The notes under the pieces: model-generated
What the model saw: only the letters and a program-made list of their open reading frames with translations
What the model was told of the DNA's origin: nothing
The model's database searches: none
In this document: in pieces, positions 6,001 through 62,250 of the stretch
Layout of the letters: each line of letters starts with the position of its first letter
How positions within the stretch are numbered: position 1 is the first letter of the stretch
Assembly (NCBI RefSeq): GCF_031769215.1
Contig: NW_026782588.1
Location: forward strand, 372,001-436,000
Direction: 5' to 3'
Source: Ylistrum balloti
Lineage: Eukaryota
DNA: 64,000 bases
Program-made: the position numbers and the translations under genes

Positions 6001-9000
6001 AGTTACGACAGTGAAGTGTAGCTGAGTTCAGCACTGTTTACCAGTTACGACAGTGAAGTGTAGCTGAGTTCTGCACTGTAGACCAGTTACGACAGTGAAG
6101 TGTAGTTGAGTTCAGCACAGTTGACGAGTTACGACAGTGAAGTGTAGCTGAGTTTAGCACTAGTTCAGCACTTTTGACCAGTTACGACAGTGAAGTGTAG
6201 CTGAGTTCAGAACTGTTGACCAGTTACGACAGTGAAGTGTAGCTGAGTTCAGTTGCAGTGAAGTGTAGCTGACTGTTGACCAGTTACGACAGTGAAGTGT
6301 AGCTGAGTTCAGCACTGTTGACCAGTTACGACAGTGAAGTGTAGCTGAGTTCTGCACTGTTGACCAGTTACGACAGTGAAGTGTAGCTGAGTTCAGCACT
6401 GTTGACCAGTTACGACAGTGAAGTGTAGCTGAGTTCAGCACTGTTGACCAGTTACGACAGCAGTGTTGACAGCAGTTACGACAGTGAAAGTGACCAGTTA
6501 CGAGTTCTGCACTGTTGACCAGTTACGACAGTGAAGTGTAGCTGAGTTCAGCACTGTTGACCAGTTACGACAGTGAAGTGTAGCTGAGTTCAGCACTGTT
6601 GACCAGTTACGACAGTGAAGTGTAGCTGAGTTCAGCACTGTTGACCAGTTACGACAGTGAAGTGGAGTTCTGCACTGTTGACCAGTTACGACAGTGAAGT
6701 GTAGCTGAGTTCAGCACTGTTGACCAGTTACGACAGTGAAGTGTAGCTGAGTTCAGCACTGTTGACCAGTTACGACAGTGAAGTGTAGCTGAGTTCAGCA
6801 CTGTTGACCAGTTACGACACTAAAGTGTAGCTGACTTCTGCACTGTAGACCAGTTACGACAGTAAATTGTAGCTGTGTTCAGCACTGTTGACCAGTTACG
6901 ACAGTGAAGTGTAGCTGAGTTCTGCACTGTTGACCAGTTACGACAGTGACGACAGTGAAGTGTAGCTGAGTTCAGCACTGTTTACCAGTTACGACAGTGA
7001 AGTGTAGATGAGTTCTGCACTGTAGACCAGTTACGACAGTGAAGTGTAGCTGAGTTCAGCACTGTTGACCAGTTACGACAGTAAATTGTAGCCGTGTTCA
7101 GCACTGTTGACCAGTTACGAAAGTGAAGTGTAGCTGAGTTCAGCACTTGTGACCAGTTACGACAGTGAAGTGGAGTTCTGCACTGTTGACCAGTTACGAC
7201 AGTGAAGTGTAGCTGAGTTCAGCACTGTTGACCAGTTACGACAGTGAAGTGGATGGAGTTCAGTTACGACAGTATATTGTAGCTGTGTTCAGCACTGTTG
7301 ACAAGTTACGACAGTGAAGTGTAGCTGAGTTCTGCACTGTACACCAGTTACGACACTGAAGTGTAGCTGAGTTCAGCACTGTTGACCAGTTACGACAGTG
7401 AAGATGAGTTCTGCACTGTTGACCAGTAACGACAGTGAAGTGGAGTTCCGCAGTGTTGACATGTTAAGACAGTGAAGTGTAGCTGAGTTCTGCACTGTTG
7501 ACCAGTTACGACAGTGAAGTGTAGCTGAGTTCAGCACTGTTGACCAGTTACGACAGTGAACTGTAGCTGAATTAAGCACTGTTGACCAGTTAAGACAGTG
7601 AAGTGTAGCTGAGTTCAGCACTGTTGACCAGTTACGACAGTAAAGTGTAGCTGAGTTCAGCACTGTTGACCAGTTACGACAGTAAATTGTAGCTGTGTTC
7701 ACCACTGTTGACCAGTTATGAAAGTGAAGTGTAGCTGAGTTATGCATTGTTGACCAGTTACGACAGTGAAGTGGAGTTTTGCACCATTGACCAGTTACGA
7801 CAGTGAAGTGTAGCTAAGTTTAGCACTGTTGACCAATTACGACAGTGTAGTGGAGTTCTGCACTGTTGAAGTTACGACAGTGAGTGTAGTGTTCAGCAAG
7901 ACCAGTTACGACAGTGCACTGTTGACCAGTTACGACAGTAAAGTGGAGTTCTGCACTGTTGACCAGTTACGACAGTGAAGTGTAGCTGAGTTCAGCACTG
8001 TTTACCAGTTACGACAGTGAAGTGTAGCTGAGTTCTGCACTGTAGACCAGTTACGACAGTGAAGTGTAGCTGAGTTCAGCACTGTTGACCAGTTACGACA
8101 GTGAAGTGTAGCTGAGTTCAGCACTGTTGACCAGTTACGACAGTGAAGTTGAGTTCTGCACTGTTGACCAGTTACGACAGTGAAGTGGAGTTCTGCACTG
8201 TTGACCAGTTACGACAGTGAAGTGGAGTTCTGCACTGTTGACCAGTTACGACAGTGAAGTGTAGCTGAGTTCAGCACTGTTGACCAGTTACGACAGTGAA
8301 GTTGAGTTCTGCACTGTTGACCAGTTAAGACAGTGAAGTGTAGCTGAGTTCAGCACTGTTGACTAGTTACGACAGTGCAGTGGAGTTCTGCAATGTTGAC
8401 CAGTTACGACAGTGAAGTGAGGTTCTGGACTGTTGACCAGTAACGACAGTGAAGTTGAGTTCTGCACTGTTGACCAGTTAAGACAGTGAAGTGGAGTTCT
8501 GCAGTGTTGACCAGTTACGACAGTGAAGTGTAGCTGAGTTCAGCACTGTTGACCAGTTACGACAGTGAAGTGTAGCTGAGTTCAGCACTGTTGACCAGTT
8601 ACGACAGTGAAGTGTAGCTGAGTTCAGCACTGTTGACCAGTTACGACAGTGAAGTGTAGCTGAGTTCTGCACTGTTGACCAGTTACGACAGTGAAGTGTA
8701 GCTGAGTTCAGCACTGTTGACCAGTTACGACAGTGAAGTGTAGCTGAGTTCTGCACTGTTGACCAGTTACGACAGTAAAGTGTAGCTGAGTTCAGCACTG
8801 TTGACCAGTTACGAAAGTGAAGTGTAGCTGAGTTCAGCACTGTTGAAAAGTTACGACAGTGAAGTGTAGCTGAGTTCTGCACCATTGACCAGTTACGAGA
8901 GTGAAGTGTAGCTTAGTTCAGCACTGTTGACCAGTGACGACAGTAAGGTGTAGCTGAGTTTAGCACTGTAGACCAATTACGAGAGTGTAATTGAGTTCTG

Positions 9001-9334
9001 CACTGTTGATCAGGTTCGACAGTAAAGTGTAGCTGAGTTTAGCACTGTTGACCAGTTACGACAGTGAAGTGTAGCTGACTTCTGCACTGTAGACCAGTTA
9101 CGACAGTAAAGTGTAGCTGAGTTCAGCACTGTTGACCAGTTACGAAAGTGAAGTGTAGCTGAGTTCAGCACTGTTGAAAAGTTACGACAGTGAAGTGTAG
9201 CTGAGTTCTGCACTGTTGACCAGTTACGACAGTGAAGTGTAGCTGAGTTCTGCACCATTGACCAGTTACGAGAGTGAAGTGTAGCTTAGTTCAGCACTGT
9301 TGACCAGTGACGACAGTAAGGTGTAGCTGAGTTT
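1..9334. repeat. Tandem satellite of 42-bp units (GCACTGTTGACCAGTTACGACAGTGAAGTGTAGCTGAGTTCA) mixed with 37-bp variants (...GAAGTGGAGTTCT); runs off the left edge of the window
   Basis: Continuous periodicity read directly. The 14-aa period (LNSATLHCRNWSTV) of the ORF-track hits equals 42 bp. The array ends abruptly at ~9334 in a T-run. Confidence 0.98.
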
Positions 9335-11429
9335 TTTTATTCGAAATTTGAACCATACCGAAAACCAAAAGTTGACATTTTCAAAAAAAAAAAAAAAAAA
9401 AAGTAATGATAAAAAAGCAGATAATAAAATGTGTGACTTTTGACCCAACAACGAGCTTTTTAATTTGACATATTAAGTATTATATGTAACGGACAAAAGT
9501 TAGATATGGAAAGTATCTACAAATAATACAAATGCACGAACTCTGTACAATCAACGATTTTCGAGATACGGCTATTTTAAAGTTGTTAACGTATGAAGTC
9601 ATGGCGGCCATATTGGATTTTTTTTTTTTGGATTTGGACTGAAAAGGCATTGACACCTTCAGATACATACCTACAATATACTGGATATGCTATAAATGTT
9701 TATCTTAACAATAAAAAGATTTGGAGTTCACAAATTTCGGAATAATAATAAGAAGAATAAGAAACATAACAATAACAATAAGTCTTTTCTCCAGATGTTT
9801 AATTCTACCATGCCTAGCGGCCAGAATGTTGATAACGACATGTTTGATGTTCGATTGAAAACTAGGTTGAAAATATTGATAATGTTTTAGAAAATTATGT
9901 ACATTGCACACGTACGGTCTTGATAAATTTTGTCTTTCCAGTAGGAAAGCATCTAACTGTTCATAAACCGGAACCAACCATTTTGTACTGCATTTGAATT
10001 ATTTAAGGGTTGTGTTACATCGATACGCATCGATAACATTTTGGTATGAACAATTACCATTAAGTGAAAGAATATATTTTGCATGTAAAAACGTGGTAGA
10101 AACAGAGAGTCATGTTATGATTGATTACTAATGAAATATCAGATTAATCCACAAATAAAAATGTTTACGTAAAACACTGTAGCTTATTAATATCTAGCCA
10201 TGTATTGACTTACGAGACATGGTAAGAACCAGCATTATATACTATATAATTCACCTCAACAGTATCGGTTTAAATCGAAAAATATAAAGTGATGTTTCAG
10301 AATCATCGCCTAATTATGTACATGAAACGACAACTTCCATGATAATATCCTCATGGACATGATAAACACCGATTTGTCTTCACTGTAACAATACTAAAAT
10401 ATACAAATTATTCTTAGAGTATGTAAAAATAGCTGATAATTTAAATCAGATTAAAGTTCTCGTTCAAATATAAGTTTATATTTCAACAGACAGGTTACCA
10501 CAACGAAATGAACTAAGGGTTCTGCGATGTCTTCTAGAAATAAAGAGGGACATATGAAGTTGTGATTTATATAATCTTCAAGTATGTAATTTATTTTCTC
10601 AGTACCATTCTGTTTCATCACGACTGTTTCAAAGATTTTAAATGCACTGGTTGACGGTATACATTATATATTAAGTCTGTCACTTTGTGTCTTTACGACC
10701 TTGTCAAACTTTGTGTCCATCACAATATTGGTTATTTGTTCACAAGACCAGTTAAACATAATTGAATGTGTTCCATGGACAACTGAAAAACCAGATTGCC
10801 ACTTGTCGGTTTCAGCATGATATGTTCAACATATCATTGAAAACTCAGTCTCTACTTTTAGGAGCCAGCAAATCTGACATTAGATGCTGATTGACGAAGA
10901 GTGCTCTACGTGTCTTTTATGTGATCTCGAAGTATTGCAGAAACGGCAACATATATGATTGTCCTAATTATGCATTTCTTGGAAATAAAAAGTTATTCGT
11001 TCCGTTCACTGGTTCCACCATGCAAATTACAAGGGTAAAGCAGTTAAAACACATCATACTGTAAACGTACTGATTCTGGCGCAATCAAATTCTTATTCTA
11101 AGCGTACCGCCATAATATGTACGTTTACACTTATCAAGGAGATAAAATTATTGATATGAAAAACATTTTAATATCTAACCAAGCAGCAACTCTGTGTTTA
11201 AAAGATAATAAATCAAACCGAAAATTTGAACAAACGGGCCCGTCACAATTCAAACGGATATATATAGTGTCACAGAGTGAATGGAGAGGCTCAGAGAGCA
11301 TACATGACAGGTAAGCAGTAACGATATTCTATAGTGGTGAGTGGGAGAGAGCTTCTAGTTAATCCTGATGCGACAAATCGTGTGTCGATGATGTTTGCTA
11401 CATTCTCAATCTTAATTCAAAATCTCAAA

Positions 11430-11862
11430 AAATAGGATAACTGTTACGTTTTCCTGACCAATCAATCAATTAATTATTGTTTGATTTTTGTAAACATAAA
11501 ATATTTAGATACTTTAAGTCTGGTTATGTTTACATTGTTGAATGGCAGCGATCCAAACATGCAAGTTGTATGTGTATTGTAAACAGAAATTCAGTTAATT
11601 AAACGTGAAATCCGACAGACGTCAGGTGGTGCTTCAAATCATTATCAAGTGATCAAAGCAATATGCATAAAAAAATAAGAGAAAAATATCTATATGAATG
11701 GATATGTCTGATGAAGAATTTATATACAATTTCTACAGCATATTACAGGTACGTGTACTAATTGTACCGCAGTACCGAAACATTCCTAGTATTGGTAGAG
11801 AACCTATCCTGTGTTACTCTATGAATACAAAACGCAATGATGTTATCAGTAAATATGTACCT
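11430..11862 (-). pseudogene. Empty, diverged paralogous unit of the galactosyltransferase locus: 3' flank joined directly to 5' flank with no CDS
   Basis: 11430-11778 aligns, visibly diverged, to the 3' flank of copy 1 (~12730-13078). It then continues at ~11783 into the 5'-flank block (ATTGGTAGAGAACCTATCCTGTG), skipping the ~1.38 kb equivalent to 13079-14462. Confidence 0.8.
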
Positions 11863-13174
11863 GAAAACACATTTTTCAAATTTTCAACTATCTTAGCCCT
11901 ATCAAGTCAACTGAAATATTCACAGAAGACAGATTAAACTGATAATGGGACGTTTCAGGTGTTGACAGCGTTGATCCTCTATCAATCTTGCGATGAAAAG
12001 AAATAACTTCAGCAAACATGTGTTTGTATGTGTTTGTATGTGAGGTTATATTAGAGACGGTATGTATTTTAATGCATGGCATGCAAATACATGTTCAAAT
12101 ATATTCCATGTCGTTTTCATTATTACAATCATTGCATCTATGTTCAATGTAATCAAAATATCATTTTTTCGATGTAATTTAATGAAATACACATTAATTT
12201 CACCCTGTTAAATAATTCATTCAATACCGCAAACATTCTTACTTCTATGCAATGAAATTTCATCACTTTGTCTGTGCGTTTGGAAAATAAGCGCAACGAT
12301 GAAATAGCACATCTACAACGATTGCTATCAACAAGATATTTCTAGAAATACTTTCAGCGGGAAAAGCGCAAAAGAAACTACCACTGAAATATGCATGTTC
12401 ACGTAATAGGTTTGAAAAGTAAACATGCCACATTAGGTGACAAGAAATATTCATGTCTGATGACACAATGTATTTTTTCACCCCGAGTGACAAAGGTGTC
12501 CTTCATCGTATAATAATTAATCGATATATGTAAGTTGTATATTTTCCCTATTTTATATTCATTTTTTAAATTACCATTATCTGATTAATGTAAGGCTAGT
12601 TAACCTTTTCATCTAGATTCTAAGATTCCTGTCGACCAATTTTAAATGTCTTCGGTCCCCTCCTCAGTATCAATATTTTTAGGCACTAAGTATCATCGAA
12701 GAATTCTAAAGGACAACACAATAGCAGTTTACTTCATATTTATTGTTTCATTTTTGTATATATTGCAAGATATTTAGATTCTTTATGTTGGTGAAGTCTG
12801 GTTATATTCACATTGTTGAATGACAGCGATCCACACAGGCAAGTTGTATATATAATCGTAAACAGAAATTAAATTACTAATAAGTGAATCCCGACAGACG
12901 CGCCATAAGATGGCGCTTCCAATCATTATCAAGTGGTCAAAGCTAGATGGATATATATATTTGCATCGAGAAATGAAGAGAAAACAATCTATATAAATGG
13001 ATATGTCTGATGAAGAAATTTTATACAATTTCTACTGTATATCACCAGTACTTACAGTAATGGAACCGCAGTACCGAAGTCAAAGCAGCGAATCACAAAG
13101 TTGTCATTTCAAAATGCATTGCAACTTAAAAAAATAAGATGAACTCCGGCTATTTGTGGAAGGATCAACTCTAT

Positions 13175-14395
13175 TCAAATGTTATCATTTCTATTAGTGT
13201 TTTCTGTTATGCAATCCTGTGTAAACATAGACACAATGTTTTCTGGAGTCAGACCATGCGAGGTTACCATATGTGGTCCCTTATATACACAGCTTTCTAA
13301 TGGCACAAGAACAGGGTTAAATCCCTGTAGACTCGTCAATGTATAACCAAGCTGTTCAATACATAACGATATATATACATCCTCAAGGTAAAAAAATGGC
13401 ACGTCTTTTGATATAGTATAGACTTTTCTCATTGTAGTCATACTAGTAACGTACCCTGTTCCTGAACAGTATCCTGGGTACACCGACCTCGGGTACTGAC
13501 GAAATGACGCATACCATTTAAATCTGCTATCTCGGACAGGTAACGCAACGTGTTTACAATATCCTCCAACAGAATTCTCAAGTTGTTTTTCATGATTTTT
13601 CACGCTTTCTAACAAATTCCGAACATTGACATATACGTCGTCATCAGTTTTCATCACAAATTTGGCAGAAGAACAAAACAAATTAGCCCACTTAAATCCC
13701 ATTAATGTTTTTAGTGTCAGATTATTGTAGCTGTCGATGAAATCCTCTTGCACGATATCCTTATATTTAGCAAACTCTCGAGTTATATCCTGTTTCAATG
13801 GCTTGTTAGACTGGGAACCCAGCAGGAAGACGTACCTTACGTTTGATGTATTGTTTTTAGAAATGTTTAGCCATGTCCTTCGAATTACCTCTCTTTTGTG
13901 TCGATTACCAGGTGTTGTCGAGATTAAAATAACAACGTCTATGTCGGAAGTTTGTTTCACACTGCATATGTCTTTGTTGACATGAATAAAGTTAAAGTTA
14001 TGCAGGAAACAGTTTGAGCAGTTATCAAGACGGGCGAGAGGGTCGAAGGTAGTTGTTGGCTCGGCACTCGTGCTCGGTGTTGTTGTTGCTGTCAAATTTG
14101 CTGTTAAAGAAGACATCGGTGTTTGTTTTTCTGATGATGACGATGGCGACGGCAACGCTGACGATTCTATCGAAGTTGTTCTTGCGTTGTTAAAATTCAT
14201 GTGACCAATAAGGTTTAACTCGGTTGTATTCCTCATATTGAATAACATCCTAGAGTTATCCCTCAGTCGGGTTTTTGTGCTATGTCTTAAGAGGAGTTCC
14301 GAGTGTTTCTTCTTGTTCGTTCTATTTAACCAAATATACACCAGCACACATGCGAACAATGGTAGTATCATCTTTAGTAGATATCTCTTAGCCAT
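13175..14395 (-). CDS. B3GALT: Beta-1,3-galactosyltransferase-like (GT31), copy 1, 406 aa, most divergent C-terminus
   Basis: Type II TM (ILPLFACVLVYIWL), Ser/Thr-rich stem, and GT31 motifs IRRTW, FVMKTDDDVYVN (DxD), YPGYCSGTGYV and LEDVY. Intact intronless ORF. The family call is firm; the exact orthologue and acceptor specificity are not. Confidence 0.93.
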   Translation of the reverse strand: MAKRYLLKMILPLFACVLVYIWLNRTNKKKHSELLLRHSTKTRLRDNSRMLFNMRNTTELNLIGHMNFNNARTTSIESSALPSPSSSSEKQTPMSSLTANLTATTTPSTSAEPTTTFDPLARLDNCSNCFLHNFNFIHVNKDICSVKQTSDIDVVILISTTPGNRHKREVIRRTWLNISKNNTSNVRYVFLLGSQSNKPLKQDITREFAKYKDIVQEDFIDSYNNLTLKTLMGFKWANLFCSSAKFVMKTDDDVYVNVRNLLESVKNHEKQLENSVGGYCKHVALPVRDSRFKWYASFRQYPRSVYPGYCSGTGYVTSMTTMRKVYTISKDVPFFYLEDVYISLCIEQLGYTLTSLQGFNPVLVPLESCVYKGPHMVTSHGLTPENIVSMFTQDCITENTNRNDNI

Positions 14396-15460
14396 GATGT
14401 GAAGTGAACTTATGATTTATGTTTAAAAGCAGTCAGCTCTAGGTTTTTCCGTCATCTACCTGAATCCGAGCATTGGTATAGAACCTATCCTGTGTTACTC
14501 TATGAATACAAAACGCAATAACGTTATCAATAAATATGTACCTGAAAACACATTTTTCAAATTTTCAACTATCTTAGCCCTATCAAGTCAACTGAAATAT
14601 TCGCAGAAGACAGATTAAACTGATAAGGGGACGTTTCAGGTGTTGACAGCGTTGATCCGTTATCAACCCTGCGATGAAAATAAATTACTTTAGCAAACAC
14701 GTGTTTGTGTGTGTTTGTATGTGAGGTTATATTAGAGACGGTATGTATATTAATGCATGGCATGCACATACATGTTCAAATATATTCCATGTCGTTTTCA
14801 TTATTACAATCATTGCATCTATGTTCAATGTAATCAAAATATCATTTTTTCGATGTAACTTAATGAAAATACACATTAATTTCACCCTGTTTAATAATTC
14901 ATTCAATACCGCAAACATTCTTACTTCTATGCAATGAAATTTCATCACTTTGTCTGTGCGTTTGGAAAATAAGCGCAATGATGAAATAGCACATCTACAA
15001 TGATTGCTATCAACAAGATAATATTTTCTGGAAATACTTTCAGCGGGAAAAGCGCTAAAGAAACTACCACTGAAATATGCATGTTCACATAATAGGTTTG
15101 AAACGTAAACATGCCACATTAGGTGACAAGAAATATTCATGTCTGATGACACAATGTATTTTTCATTTGTTAAATTTTAAAATTTTCAACTATCTTAGCC
15201 CTATCAAGTCATTATCAAGTGGTTAAAGCTAGATGGATATATACATTTGCATCGAGAAATGAAGAGAAAACAATCTGCATAAATGGATATGTCTGATGAA
15301 GAAATTTTATACAATTTCTACTGTATATTACCAGTACTTACAGTAATGGAACCGCAGTACCGAAGTCAAAGCAGCGAATCACAAAGTTGTCATTTCAAAA
15401 TGCTTTGCAACCAAAAAAAATAAGATAAACTCCGGCTATTTGTGGAAGGATCAACTCTAT

Positions 15461-16669
15461 TCAAATGTTATCAATTCTAGTAGTGTTTTCTGTTATGCAA
15501 TCCTGTGTAAACATAGACACCATGTTTTCTGGAGTCAGACCATGCGAGGTTACCATATATGGTCCCTTATATACACAGCTGTCTAATGGCACAAGAACAG
15601 GGTTAAATCCCTGTAGACTCGTCAGTGTATCACTAAGCTGTTCAATACATAACGATATATATACATCCTCAAGGTAAAAAAATGGCACGTCTTTTGATAT
15701 AGTATAGACTTTTCTCATTGTAGTCATACTAGTAACGTACCCTGTTCCTGAACAGTATCCTGGGTACACCGACCTCGGGTACTGACGAAGTGACGCGTAC
15801 CATTTAAATCTGCTATCTCGGACAGGTAACGCAACGTGTTTACAATATCCTCCAACAGAATTCTCAAGTTGTTTTTCATGATTTTTCACGCTTTCTAACA
15901 AATTCCGAACATTGACATATACGTCGTCATCAGTTTTCATCACAAATTTGGCAGAAGAACAAAACAAATTAGCCCACTTAAATCCCATTAATGTTTTTAA
16001 TGTCAGATTATTGTAGCTGTCGATGAAATCCTCTTGCACGATATCCTTATATTTAGCAAACTCTCGAGTTATATCCTGTTTCAATGGCTTGTTAGACTGG
16101 GAACCCAGCAGGAAGACGTACCTTACGTTTGATGTATTGTTTTTAGAAATGTTTAGCCATGTCCTTCGAATTACCTCTCTTTTGTGTCGATTACCAGGTG
16201 TTGTCGAGATTAAAATAACAACGTCTATGTTGGAAGTTTGTTTCACACTGCATATGTCTTTGTTGACATGAATAAAGTTAAAGTTATGTAGGAAACAGTT
16301 TGAACAGTTGTCAAGACGTGCGAGAGGGTCGATGGTAGTTGTTGGCTTGGTGCTCGTGCTCGGTGTTGTTGTTGCTGTCAAAGAAGTCATCGGTGTTCGT
16401 TTTTCTGATAATGACGATGGCGACGGCAACGCTGACGATTCTATCGATGTTGTTCGTGCGTTGTTAAAATTCATGTGACCAATAAGGTTTAACTCGGTTG
16501 TATTCCTCATATTGAATAACATCCTAGAGTTATCCCTCAGTCGGGTTTTTGTGCTATGTCTTAAGAGGAGTTCCGAGTGTTTCTTCTTGTTCGTTCTATT
16601 TAACCAAATATACACCAGCACACATGCGAACAATGGTAGTATCATCTTTAGTAGATATCTCTTAGCCAT
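15461..16669 (-). CDS. B3GALT: Beta-1,3-galactosyltransferase-like (GT31), copy 2, 402 aa
   Basis: Same motifs as copy 1, with a 12-bp shorter stem. Confidence 0.93.
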   Translation of the reverse strand: MAKRYLLKMILPLFACVLVYIWLNRTNKKKHSELLLRHSTKTRLRDNSRMLFNMRNTTELNLIGHMNFNNARTTSIESSALPSPSSLSEKRTPMTSLTATTTPSTSTKPTTTIDPLARLDNCSNCFLHNFNFIHVNKDICSVKQTSNIDVVILISTTPGNRHKREVIRRTWLNISKNNTSNVRYVFLLGSQSNKPLKQDITREFAKYKDIVQEDFIDSYNNLTLKTLMGFKWANLFCSSAKFVMKTDDDVYVNVRNLLESVKNHEKQLENSVGGYCKHVALPVRDSRFKWYASLRQYPRSVYPGYCSGTGYVTSMTTMRKVYTISKDVPFFYLEDVYISLCIEQLSDTLTSLQGFNPVLVPLDSCVYKGPYMVTSHGLTPENMVSMFTQDCITENTTRIDNI

Positions 16670-17734
16670 GATGTGAAGTGAACTTATGATTTATGTTTAA
16701 AAGCAGTCAGCTCTAGGTTTTTCCGTAATCTACATGAATCCGAGCATTGGTATAGAACCTATCCTGTGTTACTCTATGAATACAAAACGCAATAACGTTA
16801 TCAATAAATATGTACCTGAAAACACATTTTTCAAATTTTCAACTATCTTAGCCCTATCAAGTCAACTGAAATATTCGCAGAAGACAGATTAAACTGATAA
16901 GGGGACGTTTCAGGTGTTGACAGCGTTGATCCGTTATCAACCCTGCGATGAAAATAAATTACTTTAGCAAACACGTGTTTGTGTGTGTTTGTATGTGAGG
17001 TTATATTAGAGACGGTATGTATATTAATGCATGGCATGCAAATACATGTTCAAATATATTCCATGTCGTTTTCATTATTACAATCATTGCATCTATGTTC
17101 AATGTAATCAAAATATCATTTTTTCGATGTAACTTAATGAAAATACACATTAATTTCACCCTGTTTAATAATTCATTCAATACCGCAAACATTCTTACTT
17201 CTATGCAATGAAATTTCATCACTTTGTCTGTGCGTTTGGAAAATAAGCGCAATGATGAAATAGCACATCTACAATGATTGCTATCAACAAGATGATATTT
17301 TCTGGAAATACTTTCAGCGGGAAAAGCGCTAAAGAAACTACCACTGAAATATGCATGTTCACATAATAGGTTTGAAACGTAAACATGCCACATTAGGTGA
17401 CAAGAAATATTCATGTCTGATGACACAATGTATTTTTCATTTGTTAAATTTTAAAATTTTCAACTATCTTAGCCCTATCAAGTCATTATCAAGTGGTTAA
17501 AGCTAGATGGATATATACATTTGCATCGAGAAATGAAGAGAAAACAATCTGCATAAATGGATATGTCTGATGAAGAAATTTTATACAATTTCTACTGTAT
17601 ATTACCAGTACTTACAGTAATGGAACCGCAGTACCGAAGTCAAAGCAGCGAATCACAAAGTTGTCATTTCAAAATGCTTTGCAACCAAAAAAAATAAGAT
17701 AAACTCCGGCTATTTGTGGAAGGATCAACTCTAT

Positions 17735-18943
17735 TCAAATGTTATCAATTCTAGTAGTGTTTTCTGTTATGCAATCCTGTGTAAACATAGACACCATGTT
17801 TTCTGGAGTCAGACCATGCGAGGTTACCATATATGGTCCCTTATATACACAGCTGTCTAATGGCACAAGAACAGGGTTAAATCCCTGTAGACTCGTCAGT
17901 GTATCACTAAGCTGTTCAATACATAACGATATATATACATCCTCAAGGTAAAAAAATGGCACGTCTTTTGATATAGTATAGACTTTTCTCATTGTAGTCA
18001 TACTAGTAACGTACCCTGTTCCTGAACAGTATCCTGGGTACACCGACCTCGGGTACTGACGAAGTGACGCGTACCATTTAAATCTGCTATCTCGGACAGG
18101 TAACGCAACGTGTTTACAATATCCTCCAACAGAATTCTCAAGTTGTTTTTCATGATTTTTCACGCTTTCTAACAAATTCCGAACATTGACATATACGTCG
18201 TCATCAGTTTTCATCACAAATTTGGCAGAAGAACAAAACAAATTAGCCCACTTAAATCCCATTAATGTTTTTAATGTCAGATTATTGTAGCTGTCGATGA
18301 AATCCTCTTGCACGATATCCTTATATTTAGCAAACTCTCGAGTTATATCCTGTTTCAATGGCTTGTTAGACTGGGAACCCAGCAGGAAGACGTACCTTAC
18401 GTTTGATGTATTGTTTTTAGAAATGTTTAGCCATGTCCTTCGAATTACCTCTCTTTTGTGTCGATTACCAGGTGTTGTCGAGATTAAAATAACAACGTCT
18501 ATGTTGGAAGTTTGTTTCACACTGCATATGTCTTTGTTGACATGAATAAAGTTAAAGTTATGTAGGAAACAGTTTGAACAGTTGTCAAGACGTGCGAGAG
18601 GGTCGATGGTAGTTGTTGGCTTGGTGCTCGTGCTCGGTGTTGTTGTTGCTGTCAAAGAAGTCATCGGTGTTCGTTTTTCTGATAATGACGATGGCGACGG
18701 CAACGCTGACGATTCTATCGATGTTGTTCGTGCGTTGTTAAAATTCATGTGACCAATAAGGTTTAACTCGGTTGTATTCCTCATATTGAATAACATCCTA
18801 GAGTTATCCCTCAGTCGGGTTTTTGTGCTATGTCTTAAGAGGAGTTCCGAGTGTTTCTTCTTGTTCGTTCTATTTAACCAAATATACACCAGCACACATG
18901 CGAACAATGGTAGTATCATCTTTAGTAGATATCTCTTAGCCAT
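17735..18943 (-). CDS. B3GALT: Beta-1,3-galactosyltransferase-like (GT31), copy 3, 402 aa (protein identical to copy 2)
   Basis: Same GT31 motifs; the ORF-track translation is identical to copy 2. Confidence 0.92.
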   Translation of the reverse strand: MAKRYLLKMILPLFACVLVYIWLNRTNKKKHSELLLRHSTKTRLRDNSRMLFNMRNTTELNLIGHMNFNNARTTSIESSALPSPSSLSEKRTPMTSLTATTTPSTSTKPTTTIDPLARLDNCSNCFLHNFNFIHVNKDICSVKQTSNIDVVILISTTPGNRHKREVIRRTWLNISKNNTSNVRYVFLLGSQSNKPLKQDITREFAKYKDIVQEDFIDSYNNLTLKTLMGFKWANLFCSSAKFVMKTDDDVYVNVRNLLESVKNHEKQLENSVGGYCKHVALPVRDSRFKWYASLRQYPRSVYPGYCSGTGYVTSMTTMRKVYTISKDVPFFYLEDVYISLCIEQLSDTLTSLQGFNPVLVPLDSCVYKGPYMVTSHGLTPENMVSMFTQDCITENTTRIDNI

Positions 18944-20006
18944 GATGTGAAGTGAACTTATGATTTATGTTTAAAAGCAGTCAGCTCTAGGTTTTTCCGT
19001 AATCTACATGAATCCGAGCATTGGTATAGAACCTATCCTGTGTTACTCTATGAATACAAAACGCAATAACGTTATCAATAAATATGTACCTGAAAACACA
19101 TTTTTCAAATTTTCAACTATCTTAGCCCTATCAAGTCAACTGAAATATTCACAGAAGACAGATTAAACTGATAAGGGGACGTTTCAGGTGTTGACAGCGT
19201 TGATCCTCTATCAACCCTGCGATGAAAATAAATTACTTTAGCAAACGTGTTTGTGTGTGTTTGTATGTGAGGTTATATTAGAGACGGTATGTATATTAAT
19301 GCATGGCATGCAAATACATGTTCAAATATATTCCATGTCGTTTTCATTATTACAATCATTGCATCTATGTTCAATGTAATCAAAATATCATTTTTTCGAT
19401 GTAACTTAATGAAAATACACATTAATTTCACCCTGTTTAATTATTAATTCAATACCGCAAACATTCTTACTTCTGTGCAATGAAATGTCATCACTTTGTC
19501 TGTGCGTTTGGAAAATAAGCGCAATGATGAAATAGCACATCTACAATGATTGATATCAACAAGATGATATTTTCTAGAAATACTTTCAGCGGGAAAAACG
19601 CTAAAGAAACTACCACTGAAATATGCATGTTCACATAATAGGTTTGAAACGTAAACATGCCACATTAGGTGACAAGAAATATTCATGTCTGATGACACAA
19701 TGTATTTTTCATTTGTTAAATTTTAAAATTTTCAACTATCTTAGCCCTATCAAGTCATTATCAAGTGGTTAAAGCTAGATGGATATATACATTTGCATCG
19801 AGAAATGAAGAGAAAACAATCTGCATAAATGGATATGTCTGATGAAGAAATTTTATACAATTTCTACTGTATATTACCAGTACTTACAGTAATGGAACCG
19901 CAGTACCGAAGTCAAAGCAGCGAATCACAAAGTTGTCATTTCAAAATGCTTTGCAACCAAAAAAAATAAGATAAACTCCGGCTATTTGTGGAAGGATCAA
20001 CTCTAT

Positions 20007-21215
20007 TCAAATGTTATCAATTCTAGTAGTGTTTTCTGTTATGCAATCCTGTGTAAACATAGACACCATGTTTTCTGGAGTCAGACCATGCGAGGTTACC
20101 ATATATGGTCCCTTATATACACAGCTGTCTAATGGCACAAGAACAGGGTTAAATCCCTGTAGACTCGTCAGTGTATAACTAAGCTGTTCAATACATAACG
20201 ATATATATACATCCTCAAGGTAAAAAAATGGCACGTCTTTTGATATAGTATAGACTTTTCTCATTGTAGTCATACTAGTAACGTACCCTGTTCCTGAACA
20301 GTATCCTGGGTACACCGACCTCGGGTACTGACGAAGTGACGCGTACCATTTAAATCTGCTATCTCGGACAGGTAACGCAACGTGTTTACAATATCCTCCA
20401 ACAGAATTCTCAAGTTGTTTTTCATGATTTTTCACGCTTTCTAACAAATTCCGAACATTGACATATACGTCGTCATCAGTTTTCATCACAAATTTGGCAG
20501 AAGAACAAAACAAATTAGCCCACTTAAATCCCATTAATGTTTTTAATGTCAGATTATTGTAGCTGTCGATGAAATCCTCTTGCACGATATCCTTATATTT
20601 AGCAAACTCTCGAGTTATATCCTGTTTCAATGGCTTGTTAGACTGGGAACCCAGCAGGAAGACGTACCTTACGTTTGATGTATTGTTTTTAGAAATGTTT
20701 AGCCATGTCCTTCGAATTACCTCTCTTTTGTGTCGATTACCAGGTGTTGTCGAGATTAAAATAACAACGTCTATGTTGGAAGTTTGTTTCACACTGCATA
20801 TGTCTTTGTTGACATGAATAAAGTTAAAGTTATGTAGGAAACAGTTTGAACAGTTGTCAAGACGTGCGAGAGGGTCGATGGTAGTTGTTGGCTTGGTGCT
20901 CGTGCTCGGTGTTGTTGTTGCTGTCAAAGAAGTCATCGGTGTTCGTTTTTCTGATAATGACGATGGCGACGGCAACGCTGACGATTCTATCGATGTTGTT
21001 CGTGCGTTGTTAAAATTCATGTGACCAATAAGGTTTAACTCGGTTGTATTCCTCATATTGAATAACATCCTAGAGTTATCCCTCAGTCGGGTTTTTGTGC
21101 TATGTCTTAAGAGGAGTTCCGAGTGTTTCTTCTTGTTCGTTCTATTTAACCAAATATACACCAGCACACATGCGAACAATGGTAGTATCATCTTTAGTAG
21201 ATATCTCTTAGCCAT
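20007..21215 (-). CDS. B3GALT: Beta-1,3-galactosyltransferase-like (GT31), copy 4, 402 aa
   Basis: Same GT31 motifs; differs from copies 2/3 by QLSYT versus QLSDT. Confidence 0.93.
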   Translation of the reverse strand: MAKRYLLKMILPLFACVLVYIWLNRTNKKKHSELLLRHSTKTRLRDNSRMLFNMRNTTELNLIGHMNFNNARTTSIESSALPSPSSLSEKRTPMTSLTATTTPSTSTKPTTTIDPLARLDNCSNCFLHNFNFIHVNKDICSVKQTSNIDVVILISTTPGNRHKREVIRRTWLNISKNNTSNVRYVFLLGSQSNKPLKQDITREFAKYKDIVQEDFIDSYNNLTLKTLMGFKWANLFCSSAKFVMKTDDDVYVNVRNLLESVKNHEKQLENSVGGYCKHVALPVRDSRFKWYASLRQYPRSVYPGYCSGTGYVTSMTTMRKVYTISKDVPFFYLEDVYISLCIEQLSYTLTSLQGFNPVLVPLDSCVYKGPYMVTSHGLTPENMVSMFTQDCITENTTRIDNI

Positions 21216-22808
21216 GATGTGAAGTGAACTTATGATTTATGTTTAAAAGCAGTCAGCTCTAGGTTTTTCCGTAATCTACATGAATCCGAGCATTGGTATA
21301 GAACCTATCCTGTGTTACTCTATGAATACAAAACGCAATAACGTTATCAATAAATATGTACCTGAAAACACATTTTTCAAATTTTCAACTATCTTAGCCC
21401 TATCAAGTCAACTGAAATATTCACAGAAGACAGATTAAACTGATAAGGGGACGTTTCAGGTGTTGACAGCGTTGATCCTCTATCAACCCTGCGATGAAAA
21501 TAAATTACTTTAGCAAACGTGTTTGTGTGTGTTTGTATGTGAGGTTATATTAGAGACGGTATGTATATTAATGCATGGCATGCACATACATGTTCAAATA
21601 TATTCCATGTCGTTTTCATTATTACAATCATTGCATCTATGTTCAATGTAATCAAAATATCATTTTTTCGATGTAACTTAATGAAAATACACATTAATTT
21701 CACCCTGTTTAATAATTCATTCAATACCGCAAACATTCTTACTTCTATGCAATGAAATTTCATCACTTTGTCTGTGCGTTTGGAAAATAAGCGCAATGAT
21801 GAAATAGCACATCTACAATGATTGCTATCAACAAGATGATATTTTCTGGAAATACTTTCAGCGGGAAAAGCGCTAAAGAAACTACCACTGAAATATGCAT
21901 GTTCACATAATAGGTTTGAAACGTAAACATGCCACATTAGGTGACAAGAAATATTCATGTCTGATGACACAATGTATTTTTCACTCCGAGCGATCAAGGT
22001 GCCCTTCATCGCATGATAATTAATCGATATATGCAAGCCAAATATTTCCCCATTTTTTTATAGTTATTGTGTTAAATTACCATTAGTTTGAAGTATTATT
22101 CATATGTTAACGTACTTAAAACATTGGAATAATTGCACAGTTCAGCGTATACGCATTTAATCGTCGTTCTTTTCAAATTGATCGGATACGACAAAAAAAA
22201 TGTTATCTGATTAATGTAAGGCTAGTTAACCTTTTCATCTAGTCATCTAGATTCTAAGATTCCTGTCGACCAATATTAATTGTCTTCGGTCCCCTCCTCA
22301 GTATCAATATTTTTAGGCACTAAGTACCATCGAAGAATTCTAAAGGACAACACAATGGCAGTTTACTTCATATTTATTGTTTCATTTTTGTATATATTGT
22401 AAGATATTTAGATTCTTTATGTTGGTGAAGTCTGGTTATATTCACATTGTTGAATGACAGCGATCCACACAGGCAAGTTGTATATATAATGGTAAACAGA
22501 AATTAAATTACTAAAAAGTGAATCCCGACAGACGCGCCGTAAGATGGCGCTTCCAATCATTATCAAGTGGTCAAAGATAGATGGATATATATATTTGCAT
22601 CGAGAAATGAAGAGAAAACAATCTGTATAAATGGATATGTCTGATGAAGAAATTTTATACAATTTCTACTGTATATCACCAGTACTTACAGTAATGGAAC
22701 CGCAGTACCGAAGTCAAAGCAGCGAATCACAAAGTTGTCATTTCAAAATGCATTGCAACTTAAAAAAATAAGATGAACTCCGGCTATTTGTGGAAGGATC
22801 AACTCTAT

Positions 22809-24029
22809 TCAAATGTTATCAATTCTAGTAGTGTTTTCTGTTATGCAATCCTGTGTAAACATAGACACCATGTTTTCTGGAGTCAGACCATGCGAGGTTA
22901 CCATATGTGGTCCCTTATATACACAGCTGTCTAATGGCACAAGAACAGGGTTAAATCCCTGTAGACTCGTCAGTGTATAACCAAGCTGTTCAATACATAA
23001 CGATATATATACATCCTCAAGGTAAAAAAATGGCACGTCTTTTGATATAGTATAGACTTTTCTCATTGTAGTCATACTAGTAACGTACCCTGTTCCTGAA
23101 CAGTATCCTGGGTACACCGACCTCGGGTACTGACGAAATGACGCATACCATTTAAATCTGCTATCTCGGACAGGTAACGCAACGTGTTTACAATATCCTC
23201 CAACAGAATTCTCAAGTTGTTTTTCATGATTTTTCACGCTTTCTAACAAATTCCGAACATTGACATATACGTCGTCATCAGTTTTCATCACAAATTTGGC
23301 AGAAGAACAAAACAAATTAGCCCACTTAAATCCCATTAATGTTTTTAATGTCAGATTATTGTAGCTGTCGATGAAATCCTCTTGCACGATATCCTTATAT
23401 TTAGCAAACTCTCGAGTTATATCCTGTTTCAATGGCTTGTTAGACTGGGAACCCAGCAGGAAGACGTACCTTACGTTTGATGTATTGTTTTTAGAAATGT
23501 TTAGCCATGTCCTTCGAATTACCTCTCTTTTGTGTCGATTACCAGGTGTTGTCGAGATTAAAATAACAACGTCTATGTCGGAAGTTTGTTTCACACTGCA
23601 TATGTCTTTGTTGACATGAATAAAGTTAAAGTTATGAAGGAAACAGTTTGAGCAGTTATCAAGACGGGCGAGAGGGTCGAAGGTAGTTGTTGGCTCGGCA
23701 CTCGTGCTCGGTGTTGTTGTTGCTGTCAAATTTGCTGTTAAAGAAGACATCGGTGTTTGTTTTTCTGATGATGACGATGGCGACGGCAACGCTGACGATT
23801 CTATCGATGTTGTTCGTGCGTTGTTAAAATTCATGTGACCAATAAGGTTTAACTCGGTTGTATTCCTCATATTGAATAACATCCTAGAGTTATCCCTCAG
23901 TCGGGTTTTTGTGCTATGTCTTAAGAGGAGTTCCGAGTGTTTCTTCTTGTTCGTTCTATTTAACCAAATATACACCAGCACACATGCGAACAATGGTAGT
24001 ATCATCTTTAGTAGATATCTCTTAGCCAT
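22809..24029 (-). CDS. B3GALT: Beta-1,3-galactosyltransferase-like (GT31), copy 5, 406 aa
   Basis: Same GT31 motifs, long stem. Confidence 0.93.
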   Translation of the reverse strand: MAKRYLLKMILPLFACVLVYIWLNRTNKKKHSELLLRHSTKTRLRDNSRMLFNMRNTTELNLIGHMNFNNARTTSIESSALPSPSSSSEKQTPMSSLTANLTATTTPSTSAEPTTTFDPLARLDNCSNCFLHNFNFIHVNKDICSVKQTSDIDVVILISTTPGNRHKREVIRRTWLNISKNNTSNVRYVFLLGSQSNKPLKQDITREFAKYKDIVQEDFIDSYNNLTLKTLMGFKWANLFCSSAKFVMKTDDDVYVNVRNLLESVKNHEKQLENSVGGYCKHVALPVRDSRFKWYASFRQYPRSVYPGYCSGTGYVTSMTTMRKVYTISKDVPFFYLEDVYISLCIEQLGYTLTSLQGFNPVLVPLDSCVYKGPHMVTSHGLTPENMVSMFTQDCITENTTRIDNI

Positions 24030-25625
24030 GATGTGAAGTGAACTTATGATTTATGTTTAAAAGCAGTCAGCTCTAGGTTTTTCCGTCATCTACATGAATC
24101 CGAGCATTGGTATAGAACCTATCCTGTGTTACTCTATGAATACAAAACGCAATAACGTTATCAATAAATATGTACCTGAAAACACATTTTTCAAATTTTC
24201 AACTATCTTAGCCCTATCAAGTCAACTGAAATATTCACAGAAGACAGATTAAACTGATAAGGGGACGTTTCAGGTGTTGACAGCGTTGATCCTCTATCAA
24301 CCCTGCGATGAAAATAAATTACTTTAGCAAACGTGTTTGTGTGTGTTTGTATGTGAGGTTATATTAGAGACGGTATGTATATTAATGCATGGCATGCACA
24401 TACATGTTCAAATATATTCCATGTCGTTTTCATTATTACAATCATTGCATCTATGTTCAATGTAATCAAAATATCATTTTTTCGATGTAACTTAATGAAA
24501 ATACACATTAATTTCACCCTGTTTAATAATTCATTCAATACCGCAAACATTCTTACTTCTATGCAATGAAATTTCATCACTTTGTCTGTGCGTTTGGAAA
24601 ATAAGCGCAATGATGAAATAGCACATCTACAATGATTGCTATCAACAAGATGATATTTTCTGGAAATACTTTCAGCGGGAAAAGCGCTAAAGAAACTACC
24701 ACTGAAATATGCATGTTCACGTAATAGGTTTGAAACGTAAACATGCCACATTAGGTGACAAGAAATATTCATGTCTGATGACACAATGTATTTTTCACTC
24801 CGAACGATCAAGGTGCCCTTCATCGCATGATAATTAATCGATATATGCAAGCCAAATATTTCCCCATTTTTTTATAGTTATTGTTTTAAATTACCATTAG
24901 TTTGAAGTATTATTCATATGTTAACGTACTTAAAACATTGGAATAATTGCACAGTTCAGCGTATACGCATTTAATCGTCGTTCTTTTCAAATTGATCGGA
25001 TACGACAAAAAAAATGTTATCTGATTAATGTAAGGCTAGTTAACCTTTTCATCTAGTCATCTAGATTCTAAGATTCCTGTCGACCAATATTAATTGTCTT
25101 CGGTCCCCTCCTCAGTATCAATATTTTTAGGCACTAAGTACCATCGAAGAATTCTAAAGGACAACACAATGGCAGTTTACTTTATATTTATTGTTTCATT
25201 TTTGTATATATTGTAAGATATTTAGATTCTTTATGTTGGTGAAGTCTGGTTATATTCACATTGTTGAATGACAGCGATCCACACAGGCCAGTTGTATATA
25301 TATAATCGTAAACAGAAATTAAATTACTAAAAAGTGAATCCCGACAGACTCGCCATAAGATGGCGCTTCCAATCATTATCAAGTGGTCAAAGCTAGATGG
25401 ATATATATATATTTGCATCGAGAAATGGAGAGAAAACAATCTGCATAAATGGATATGTCTGATGAAGAAATTTTATACAATTTCTACTGTATATTACCAG
25501 TACTTACAGTAATGGAACCACAGTACCGAAGTCAAAGCAGCGAATCACAAAGTTGTCATTTCAAAATGCTTTGCAACTTAAAAAATAACATGAACTTCGG
25601 CTATTTGTGGAAGGATCAACTCTAT

Positions 25626-26846
25626 TCAAATGTTATCAATTCTAGTAGTGTTTTCTGTTATGCAATCCTGTGTAAACATAGACACCATGTTTTCTGGAGT
25701 CAGACCATGCGAGGTTACCATATATGGTCCCTTATATACACAGCTGTCTAATGGCACAAGAACAGGGTTAAATCCCTGTAGACTCGTCAGTGTATAACTA
25801 AGCTGTTCAATACATAACGATATATATACATCCTCAAGGTAAAAAAATGGCACGTCTTTTGATATAGTATAGACTTTTCTCATTGTAGTCATACTAGTAA
25901 CGTACCCTGTTCCTGAACAGTATCCTGGGTACACCGACCTCGGGTACTGACGAAATGACGCATACCATTTAAATCTGCTATCTCGGACAGGTAACGCAAC
26001 GTGTTTACAATATCCTCCAACAGAATTCTCAAGTTGTTTTTCATGATTTTTCACGCTTTCTAACAAATTCCGAACATTGACATATACGTCGTCATCAGTT
26101 TTCATCACAAATTTGGCAGAAGAACAAAACAAATTAGCCCACTTAAATCCCATTAATGTTTTTAGTGTCAGATTATTGTAGCTGTCGATGAAATCCTCTT
26201 GCACGATATCCTTATATTTAGCAAACTCTCGAGTTATATCCTGTTTCAATGGCTTGTTAGACTGGGAACCCAGCAGGAAGACGTACCTTACGTTTGATGT
26301 ATTGTTTTTAGAAATGTTTAGCCATGTCCTTCGAATTACCTCTCTTTTGTGTCGATTACCAGGTGTTGTCGAGATTAAAATAACAACGTCTATGTCGGAA
26401 GTTTGTTTCACACTGCATATGTCTTTGTTGACATGAATAAAGTTAAAGTTATGAAGGAAACAGTTTGAGCAGTTATCAAGACGGGCGAGAGGGTCGAAGG
26501 TAGTTGTTGGCTCGGCACTCGTGCTCGGTGTTGTTGTTGCTGTCAAATTTGCTGTTAAAGAAGACATCGGTGTTTGTTTTTCTGATGATGACGATGGCGA
26601 CGGCAACGCTGACGATTCTATCGATGTTGTTCGTGCGTTGTTAAAATTCATGTGACCAATAAGGTTTAACTCGGTTGTATTCCTCATATTGAATAACATC
26701 CTAGAGTTATCCCTCAGTCGGGTTTTTGTGCTATGTCTTAAGAGGAGTTCCGAGTGTTTCTTCTTGTTCGTTCTATTTAACCAAATATACACCAGCACAC
26801 ATGCGAACAATGGTAGTATCATCTTTAGTAGATATCTCTTAGCCAT
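25626..26846 (-). CDS. B3GALT: Beta-1,3-galactosyltransferase-like (GT31), copy 6, 406 aa (5'-most copy)
   Basis: Same GT31 motifs. Long stem, with C-terminal residues shared with copy 4. Confidence 0.93.
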   Translation of the reverse strand: MAKRYLLKMILPLFACVLVYIWLNRTNKKKHSELLLRHSTKTRLRDNSRMLFNMRNTTELNLIGHMNFNNARTTSIESSALPSPSSSSEKQTPMSSLTANLTATTTPSTSAEPTTTFDPLARLDNCSNCFLHNFNFIHVNKDICSVKQTSDIDVVILISTTPGNRHKREVIRRTWLNISKNNTSNVRYVFLLGSQSNKPLKQDITREFAKYKDIVQEDFIDSYNNLTLKTLMGFKWANLFCSSAKFVMKTDDDVYVNVRNLLESVKNHEKQLENSVGGYCKHVALPVRDSRFKWYASFRQYPRSVYPGYCSGTGYVTSMTTMRKVYTISKDVPFFYLEDVYISLCIEQLSYTLTSLQGFNPVLVPLDSCVYKGPYMVTSHGLTPENMVSMFTQDCITENTTRIDNI

Positions 26847-26992
26847 GATGTGAAGTGAACTTATGATTTATGTTTAAAAGCAGTCAGCTCTAGGTTTTTC
26901 CGTCATCTACATGAATCCGAGCATTGGTATAGAACCTATCCTGTGTTACTCTATGAATACAAAGCGCAATAACGTTATCAGTAAATATGTAC

Positions 26993-27405
26993 ACACGTTT
27001 TTTAATCAAGTTTCTTTATCTAATCAAGTGAAATATGAACAGGAAAAAAAATCACTGATAAGGGGACATGTCAGGTTGTGGGTGTTCATCCTCTATTTTT
27101 ATTGCAATTTGTTTGGGTGTGATTGCATGTGAATTCATTGCAAGTATATACATGTTCATAATGCACATGTTTTCAATGTCATCAATATATAATATTTTAC
27201 AAAGTAACTAAGTTAGAATACACATTAATTTCCCACTGTTAAATATTCCATTTATTACCGCAAACCTCTTTATTATGTGTAATTAAATTTCAACACTTCG
27301 TCAGTGCATTTGACAAATTAGCTCAATGATGAAATAACGCATTCACAATGCTATCAACACAAATATATTTTTTATCAAAATTTTCAGCGGGAAAATCGCT
27401 AATTA
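26993..27405. other. Diverged paralog of the array spacer (upstream region of copy 6)
   Basis: Colinear, diverged match to 14545-15060, with shared blocks CTGATAAGGGGAC, ATACACATTAATTTC, ATACCGCAAAC/TTACCGCAAAC, CAATGATGAAATA and TTTCAGCGGGAAAA. Confidence 0.8.
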
Positions 27406-31066: not shown

Positions 31067-31984
31067 ATGGCGTTGATGCTACCACAGCGGCTACAACTGG
31101 AGCGCTTGAGGTAACAACTGAGGCAGAACCAACGGCAACGGTAAACTGTTATTGCAGCTATAGTTGTATTGGAACACCAGCGGGTCCGTCGGGAAGACGA
31201 ACGGTTTGGGTAAAACCCTGGCGTACCACCCTAGGACACTATGATACGTTAATGCAGGAGCTCATGAGGGAATCTCGGGAGATTTCATGTCCTACCCTCA
31301 TTGCTAAGGAGCCATAGACGGCAAACACATCGCCATCAAGAAGCCACGACATTCCGGTACCGCATATGGTAACTAAGGGTTTTTTCTCCATTGTGCTCTT
31401 GGGGCTTGTCGACGCAGACTATAAGTTTTTGTGGGTGAACGTTGGTGCGAAATAATCCATGTCTGATGCTGGTGTCTTCAATGAGTCAACCCTGGAACCT
31501 GCTCTTCGACAGAAAACCCTTGGCCTTCCACCCCCAGAGCGTCTACCCAATGATAACGATATTTCACCATATTTTATTGTTGGAGATGACGCCTTTCCTC
31601 TGCGTACATACCTCATGAAACCATACTCCCACCATTACCTTGAGCACGACGAAAGAGTCTTCAATTATCGTACATCCCGTGGCAGGAGGGTGGTCGAAAA
31701 CCCATTTGGGATACCTGCCATGCGCTTCCGATGTCTGTTGACGCATTTGCAGACCACACCCGAGAACGCTATTTTGATTACGAAAGCATGCGTCGTTCTA
31801 CATCAGATAATGTGACAGAGATTCCCAAACCTCCAGAATGCATACCTAGACCAAGAAGCAATCGACGGGCAGATAACACCAGGTGCATTGAGAGACCAAG
31901 CGATGATGCAAGAAATGGAAATCGGACGTGCTCCCCGTGAAACCCGAGAAGGAAAGCTCCTCCGTACAGCACTCAAGTACTACA
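31067..31984 (+). pseudogene. Harbinger (HARBI1-like DDE) transposase remnant with stops, frameshifts and a large internal deletion
   Basis: Recognisable segments RRTVWVKPW..LGHYDTLMQEL, GFFSIVLLGLVDADYKFLWVNVG, SDAGVF, FIVGDDAFPLRTYLMKPY, ERVFNYRTSRGRRVVENPFGI and KACVVLH. Confidence 0.9.
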
Positions 31985-32085: not shown

Positions 32086-32571
32086 CTTTAAGCTAAGGAC
32101 GATAATGGTCTATAAACACAGAGACAATGATATATAACCATAATGCCATAAACAACGCTAGACTTACGGCGATCATACGGCGACCGTACGGCGATCTTAC
32201 GGTGCCCTTATGTAGAACAAAAAACCGTGAGGGAACCTTACGATTGCCTTACGGTCACCGTAATGTCTCCTTGCGGTCACCGTAAGGTCACCTATTGGTA
32301 CCGTAACGGTAACCTAACGGGACTTCATACCATGACTTTTACGATTGCCGTACGGTCTCCGCAACATTTGTGAACCCATCGCAAGCCCGCAACGCCGTAC
32401 GATTTGCAAAAATCGCATCTACAAACCGCTTACCGCAAAACCGTACGGCGACCACATCATATGTGACTCAGGCATTAGGTTGAACAAAAGATACACAGTG
32501 TATAGTGCCATATGATACAAACTTAGAATTCGATACAATACAACTGAACAATGAATTTTACTGCATCATGT

Positions 32572-62243: not shown

Positions 62244-62250
62244 GACTTAC

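Follow-up and report, generated by a model that had tools for sequence, protein, structure and literature searches.

A six-unit tandem array of galactosyltransferase genes in Ylistrum balloti, probably founded by unequal crossover between old paralogous segments

How did six closely similar galactosyltransferase genes come to stand in tandem in the genome of Ylistrum balloti, and can the event that founded the array still be read from its letters? The window analyzed here is a stretch of 64,000 nt from the Y. balloti assembly GCF_031769215.1 (contig NW_026782588.1:372,001-436,000, forward strand), and all positions below are those of the window. The genes lie on the minus strand within 15.2 kb of AT-rich DNA (~34% GC). 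Judged from its sequence, the locus is a real tandem array of what is predicted to be a single-exon, Golgi-type GT31 beta-1,3-galactosyltransferase gene. We think it probable that this array was founded by an unequal crossover between old paralogous segments and then grew by layered amplification.

The array consists of six tandem units delimited by seven copies of a 61-bp block (n+1 copies for n units). For the 14-nt sequence at its head there are exactly seven matches, at 11800, 14481, 16755, 19029, 21301, 24115 and 26932, where 0.03 would be expected by chance. From left to right, the units (U1 to U6) measure 2681, 2274, 2274, 2272, 2814 and 2817 bp and are of three types: alpha (U1, 11800-14480), beta (U2, 14481-16754; U3, 16755-19028; U4, 19029-21300) and gamma (U5, 21301-24114; U6, 24115-26931). 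Each unit carries one minus-strand open reading frame (ORF), at 13175-14395, 15461-16669, 17735-18943, 20007-21215, 22809-24029 and 25626-26846, respectively, with the block situated 86-146 bp upstream of the ATG. All six ORFs are intact, encoding proteins of 402-406 amino acids (406 in U1, U5 and U6; 402 in U2) that are 96-99% identical to one another, and no stop codons were seen in them in a whole-genome scan.

The evidence for how the array began is contained in the letters of the block. At the left end (11780-11860, where 20 nt of weaker homology precede the 61-bp block) it reads AATGATGTT..TCAGTAAAT..GTAC, then CCTGAAAAC, with a private G and T at block positions 40 and 42. The right-end copy (26932-26992) reads AATAACGTT..TCAGTAAAT..GTAC, then ACACGTTTT; it has a private G at position 33 and, like the left end, a G at position 50. 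All five internal blocks read AATAACGTT..TCAATAAAT..GTAC, then CCTGAAAAC; they are identical to one another across the block and have an A at position 50 that is private to them. The internal junction therefore is a chimera, which corresponds to the right-end copy through position 42 (sites 40 and 42) and to the left-end copy from position 61 on, placing the exchange between positions 43 and 61. Its polarity is the expected one, with the distal end copy beside the 5' region of the gene and the proximal one on the far side, and the junctions are seamless. The two end blocks agree at 58 of 61 positions; if background identity is 77-80%, a match this good has a binomial tail probability of 1e-4 to 8e-4 for each window compared. 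It is in this same 61-bp block that the array ends on either side, within ~80 bp of the same phase of a unit that is ~2.8 kb long.

Beyond the end blocks lie two diverged segments. To the right, A' (26993-27402) is an old copy of spacer A, the first ~580 bp of the unit, with 79-80% identity over aligned bases (62-63% counting gaps). To the left, C' (11471-11779) is a diverged copy of segment C, which lies just 3' of the ORF (unit positions 1071-1416), with 84% identity over aligned bases (74% counting gaps). These segments correspond to the diverged left 3' flank and the diverged right spacer that an initial annotation of this DNA had named as the bounds of the array. The same annotation had described a near-identical block of ~60 bp at both ends, five hybrid internal junctions in which right-end letters are followed by left-end letters and a private base is present, and six intact ORFs; the block and the ORFs were found as described, and the junctions agree with the description letter for letter.

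C' is an "empty" copy, without the gene, that directly adjoins the homology preceding the left-end block. Its similarity to the units breaks off at precisely the base that opens their gene-bearing 1377-bp segment, and is followed by the ~20 nt of homology to the 5' region of the unit and then by the block. A dispersed repeat family, whose copies are scattered over many contigs at 66-80% identity, accounts for the left two-thirds of C. The left part of C' is from this family too and has its repeat sequence extending further leftward than in C. For the right 120 bp of C, the sole match is the right 120 bp of C', and vice versa, at 80%. The locus-specific end of C', the stop of its homology at the start of the gene segment and the homology before the block together indicate that what lies to the left of the array resembles a unit from which the gene is missing. 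That C' is a mere transposon copy is made less plausible by the locus-specific right 120 bp, the exact stop of the homology and the differing extent of the repeat. The empty segment may have lost its gene by deletion, which is a simpler account than an insertion into the other copy. Retroposition of the gene into an empty site is not supported, since neither a poly(A) remnant nor a target-site duplication was found at the boundaries of the 1377-bp segment. No further galactosyltransferase copy was found beyond either end of the array by tblastn (E value up to 10) or word-7 blastn. Just to the left of the array, the contigs of all four public sequencing runs compared below join 11053 directly to 11614; the 560 bp skipped (11054-11613) are an indel polymorphism that cuts into the repeat copy C'.

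The n+1 blocks, the chimeric junction, the identity of the internal junctions and the position of both boundaries on one block fit a single unequal exchange followed by amplification. Before the array existed, the locus would have had the order C'-block-A ... C-gene-block-A', with one gene between two direct, old paralogous segments, the left of which was gene-less. The 61-bp island of ~95% identity would have been the only good substrate for homologous exchange, and one unequal crossover between its positions 43 and 61 would have doubled the unit block-A-C-gene, leaving the hybrid junction between the copies. Since only the internal junctions have the A at position 50, a G-to-A change in the hybrid copy presumably gave rise to it after this first event and before the junction spread. 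Subsequent unequal exchanges and gene conversions would have altered the copy number, shuffled variants and yielded the alpha, beta and gamma types, while the outermost spacer remained the most diverged; the outcome would be a dosage array whose copy number and composition vary among individuals. The order of these events, homologous recombination as their enzymology and any benefit of dosage are what we infer.

The high identity of the end blocks might also have been produced by later gene conversion, a possibility that we reject. Conversion from an internal copy by way of spacer A would overwrite the left-end letters at positions 40, 42 and 50 before it reached the shared part of the block, yet the left end retains its own letters at these positions, which lie between spacer A and that shared part. 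We take their retention to mean that the island of identity predates the event, which would explain why the exchange took place where it did. The block may be promoter or 5' untranslated sequence under constraint, which is a possible reason for the island.

The units also carry a record of what followed. The gamma type is the longest. The alpha unit is without 117-120 bp found in the gamma units, a deletion with 3-4 bp of microhomology. In the beta units, 575 bp of spacer are deleted and a patch of ~45 nt includes a 33-37-nt copy of unit positions 74-110, ~600 bp away; from its sequence, this patch reads as a templated-filler repair scar, and it is common to the three beta units (~15165-15208, 17439-17482 and 19711-19754). 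The beta ORFs have, in addition, a 12-bp in-frame deletion and ~14 substitutions, both synonymous and nonsynonymous, clustered in the part that encodes the stem.

Different segments group the units differently. In spacer A, U1 is the outlier of the array (17-22 differences in ~620), and U2 to U6 are close to one another, U4 having private variants there. In the 5' half of the ORF, U1, U5 and U6 are nearly alike (0-3 differences) and set apart from the beta units (12-14 in 600). In the segment of the 3' untranslated region, U1 and U5 are together and U6 is alone. U4 combines beta and gamma states in a mosaic and has a 2-bp gap in common with the gamma units. Such conflicting groupings argue for repeated unequal exchange or gene conversion, not for one unit copied five times. 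The initial annotation had proposed that one event of non-allelic homologous recombination (NAHR) made the unit, which then amplified; the founding junction supports the first half of this proposal, whereas the three types and the mosaic show that amplification was not a single step. The divergence of the U1 spacer is the usual edge effect.

The amount of divergence differs greatly among these comparisons. Only 2 of 2274 sites separate U2 from U3, and U5 and U6 are 0.85% apart; in spacer A, substitutions set U1 off from the other units by ~3%, and the old paralogous segments differ by 16-21%. The very recent expansion that had been proposed thus applies to the beta triplet only (0-2 differences per 2274 bp), the first duplication being ~3% old. 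Selection for increased dosage, which had been proposed as the alternative, is not borne out: the ratio of nonsynonymous to synonymous substitution rates (dN/dS) between copies is 0.2-0.56, calculated on very few changes, and gives no sign of positive selection.

Other individuals also appear to carry the array. Five public runs, all of them Logan contigs and none RNA, hold 62-70% of the 31-mers sampled from U6 and the right flank, which implies individuals other than the assembled one, ~1.2-1.5% diverged by our own estimate from shared 31-mers. Four of these runs (X1, X2, X4 and X5, the last of which carries another organism label) were compared over 11000-16999, with contig depth, one mean per contig, serving as a rough proxy for copy number; gaps in contig coverage prove little in such data. 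The left-flank contig, 1.5 kb long, stops at 11828, the exact point from which it shares k-mers with the internal junctions, and has a depth of 13.9, 15.5, 15.7 and 10 in X1, X2, X4 and X5, respectively. A right-end-like contig of 1.45 kb, which begins inside the block, has two differences there and then leaves the stretch, has a depth of 16, 13 and 14.8 in X1, X2 and X4; none was seen in X5. For the gene contig, the depths are 80, 70, 61 and 17.6, and for the contig that leads from the internal junction into spacer A they are 77, 65, 44 and 19 (X1, X2, X4 and X5). At similar flank depth, the ratios of unit to flank are 5.8, 4.5, 3.9 and 1.8, to be halved per haplotype if the flank contigs come from a single haplotype; the ratio of 1.8 in X5 could mean one or two copies per haplotype. 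In X1, all of the differences in the junction contig (8/8) are outside the block, and this run thus contains the hybrid junction, along with its private base, at ~5.6 times the flank depth (77 vs 13.9). For the junction contigs of X2, X4 and X5, the comparison covers part of the differences.

Composition varies as well. The depths of alpha-like and gamma-like spacers are 60:42 in X1, 0:65 in X2, 30:35 in X4 and 11:6 in X5, and the stretches specific to the beta type (~15164-15244 and 15600-16599), which accounts for three of the six assembled units, have zero contig depth in all four runs. Taken together, these data support a locus of several copies that differs in composition from one individual to another and probably in copy number as well. 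Of the copy-number polymorphism thought probable in the initial annotation, multi-copy depth and differing composition are supported, while the differing number is read from rough contig depth.

Several points weigh against the origin that we propose and the array that it is meant to explain. The diagnostic sites are few, consisting of two linked sites on the right-end side and, on the left-end side, a 6-bp indel with the sequence that follows it. At position 33, the right end has a private G for which a later change must be assumed. As a measure of copy number, mean contig depth is rough, and the copies per haplotype are halved if the flank contigs represent one haplotype. Finally, the beta type is absent from all four runs, and the assembled array may thus be a composite of two haplotypes.

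Were this last point correct, the count of six would be a product of assembly: each haplotype would have fewer units, and the contig would join the beta units of one with the alpha and gamma units of the other. Such an error would account for the zero depth of the beta-specific stretches in 4/4 public runs and for the clean split into alpha, beta-beta-beta and gamma-gamma, and the assembly has no separate haplotig of the locus. We nevertheless consider it unlikely. All six units are distinct, which argues against simple over-expansion by the assembler, and U4 is a mosaic of beta and gamma of the kind that natural exchange would give. The junctions are without seams, the 15.2-kb array is within the reach of a single long read, and other individuals have 4-6 times the flank depth without any beta units. 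Six is, in any case, the count in the assembled contig as its sequence stands.

The array might instead be old, with a period of ~2.8 kb and no birth event. Its inner units would have been homogenized by concerted evolution while its edges decayed, the left losing the gene and the right being truncated, and the "hybrid" junction would be ancestral. C' and A' do resemble decayed edge units of such a period, and the outermost spacer A, that of U1, is the most diverged, a classic edge effect. However, at either end the switch from diverged to near-identical sequence takes place in the same ~80 bp of the unit's phase, which by our own estimate would happen by chance in ~6% of cases in a 2.8-kb unit, and the private base of the internal junctions is missing from both ends. 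An old array of this kind seems to us quite improbable, and it differs from founding by unequal crossover, in effect, only in how long the array has existed.

That the first duplication arose by replicative template switching or end joining, or by recombination between dispersed transposon copies, and not by homologous recombination, is barely credible: templated-filler and microhomology deletions do occur at the same locus (in the beta and alpha spacers) and part of C is a dispersed repeat, but the breakpoint lies in a 61-bp island of 95% identity, far more than template switching would require, and we reject transposon-mediated recombination because the block, spacer A and A' have no match outside the locus anywhere in the genome (648.5 Mb searched) and the dispersed part of C is away from the breakpoint.

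Founding by unequal crossover would place the locus among well-known arrays. Drosophila Bar, human AMY1 and the red/green opsin array are tandem gene arrays formed by unequal crossover, or NAHR. In common with these, the array described here has n+1 repeats for n units and a chimeric internal junction, and it would share with them direct repeats around an ancestral single gene and later exchange leading to copy-number polymorphism and mosaics. It differs from them in its presumed substrate, a 61-bp island of high identity within old local paralogous segments, one of them without the gene, rather than a transposon pair or a large segmental duplication, and in its small unit (2.3-2.8 kb) with one intronless gene.

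The protein encoded by the array belongs to family GT31 by its sequence features. Pfam Galactosyl_T (PF01762, GT31) matches all copies with an E value of ~9e-51, next to a weaker match to Fringe, and the alpha, beta and gamma copies score 173 bits where the cut-off for the family is 23. A DxD motif, which binds metal and nucleotide sugar, and a downstream EDV motif are the defining marks of GT31 and Galactosyl_T; the corresponding residues D251-D252-D253 and E338-D339-V340 are invariant in six of six copies. A hydrophobic stretch at approximately residues 8-23 and a Ser/Thr/Pro-rich stem at ~75-117, both judged by eye, precede the catalytic domain, an arrangement that would suit a type II membrane protein. 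The best solved relative is human B3GALT5 (PDB 8zwp; E value 5.5e-46, residues 144-387), followed by B3GNT2, with scores of 161 and 94 bits, respectively. The higher score for B3GALT5 is only a hint that the enzyme may transfer beta-1,3-galactosyl rather than GlcNAc or GalNAc. The protein resembles the B3GALT5, or B3GALT1/2/5, group of CAZy GT31 in its aligned catalytic domain (144-387), its DDD and EDV motifs, its putative N-terminal hydrophobic anchor and its Ser/Thr/Pro-rich stem, whereas with vertebrate B3GALT5 itself it matches over the catalytic domain only.

At least 85 GT31-like loci are present in the genome, several of them in diverged clusters, and the closest paralog outside the array is 46-50% identical at the protein level; the assembly contains no second copy of the array locus. 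Among the more diverged GT31-like clusters are those on contigs C893 (115451-152001), C146 (4063890-4078962) and C595 (595233-608554). The public annotation of the contig already includes the genes of the array. In it, the beta copies are modeled at full length (402 amino acids), and the alpha and gamma copies (13175-14395, 22809-24029 and 25626-26846) as proteins of 353 amino acids that start at M54 and are without the predicted membrane anchor; these starts are either an annotation quirk or a hint of differing transcript starts. Spacer ORFs of 141-163 amino acids were rejected as genes because they have no Pfam match, begin at non-ATG starts and are not preserved in A'. No noncoding RNA or tRNA was found in the units.

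Elsewhere in the window there are five satellite arrays (112-9333, 57980-62244, 62624-63623, 32564-33154 and 37838-38442), with unit types of 42 bp (~224 copies), 27 bp (~159 copies, with strong GC skew), 37 bp, 45 bp (13 copies) and 37 bp (16 copies). Two scraps of transposons lie on the plus strand, a DDE_Tnp_4 fragment at 31459-31815 (E value 3.5e-13) and a reverse-transcriptase fragment at 33767-34309 (E value 2.6e-8). An intact plus-strand ORF of 344 amino acids at 46312-47346, ~19 kb to the right of the GT31 array, matches Pfam Glyco_transf_11, the alpha-1,2-fucosyltransferase family (GT11), with an E value of 5.5e-43.

This gene and the array together might form a polymorphic glycan-synthesis locus in which pathogen- or symbiont-driven selection keeps dosage and the beta stem variants variable, an idea that we regard as highly doubtful. 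If it were true, successive beta-1,3-Gal and alpha-1,2-Fuc steps would lead to H-type-1-like structures, and the locus would be a bivalve counterpart of the secretor/ABO-type polymorphism.

A literature search turned up no paper about this array, nor any about GT31 arrays of scallops or oysters. Haplotype diversity in copy number and in presence or absence has been described in the pearl oyster (PMC9646362), a mussel (PMC10514466) and corals (PMC12314368). The setting resembles that of Y. balloti in being a highly heterozygous marine invertebrate in which the content of tandem clusters varies by haplotype and individual. Those studies are surveys of whole genomes, whereas in the array the founding junction can be read base by base.

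The array is a clean but ordinary tandem gene amplification, and it changes no concept. Its start and evolution are legible within 16 kb: the junction that founded it, the old paralogous substrates, of which one is without the gene, the edge effect and the templated-filler deletions. To the known haplotype diversity of bivalves it adds a copy-number locus in a glycosylation gene that can be genotyped.

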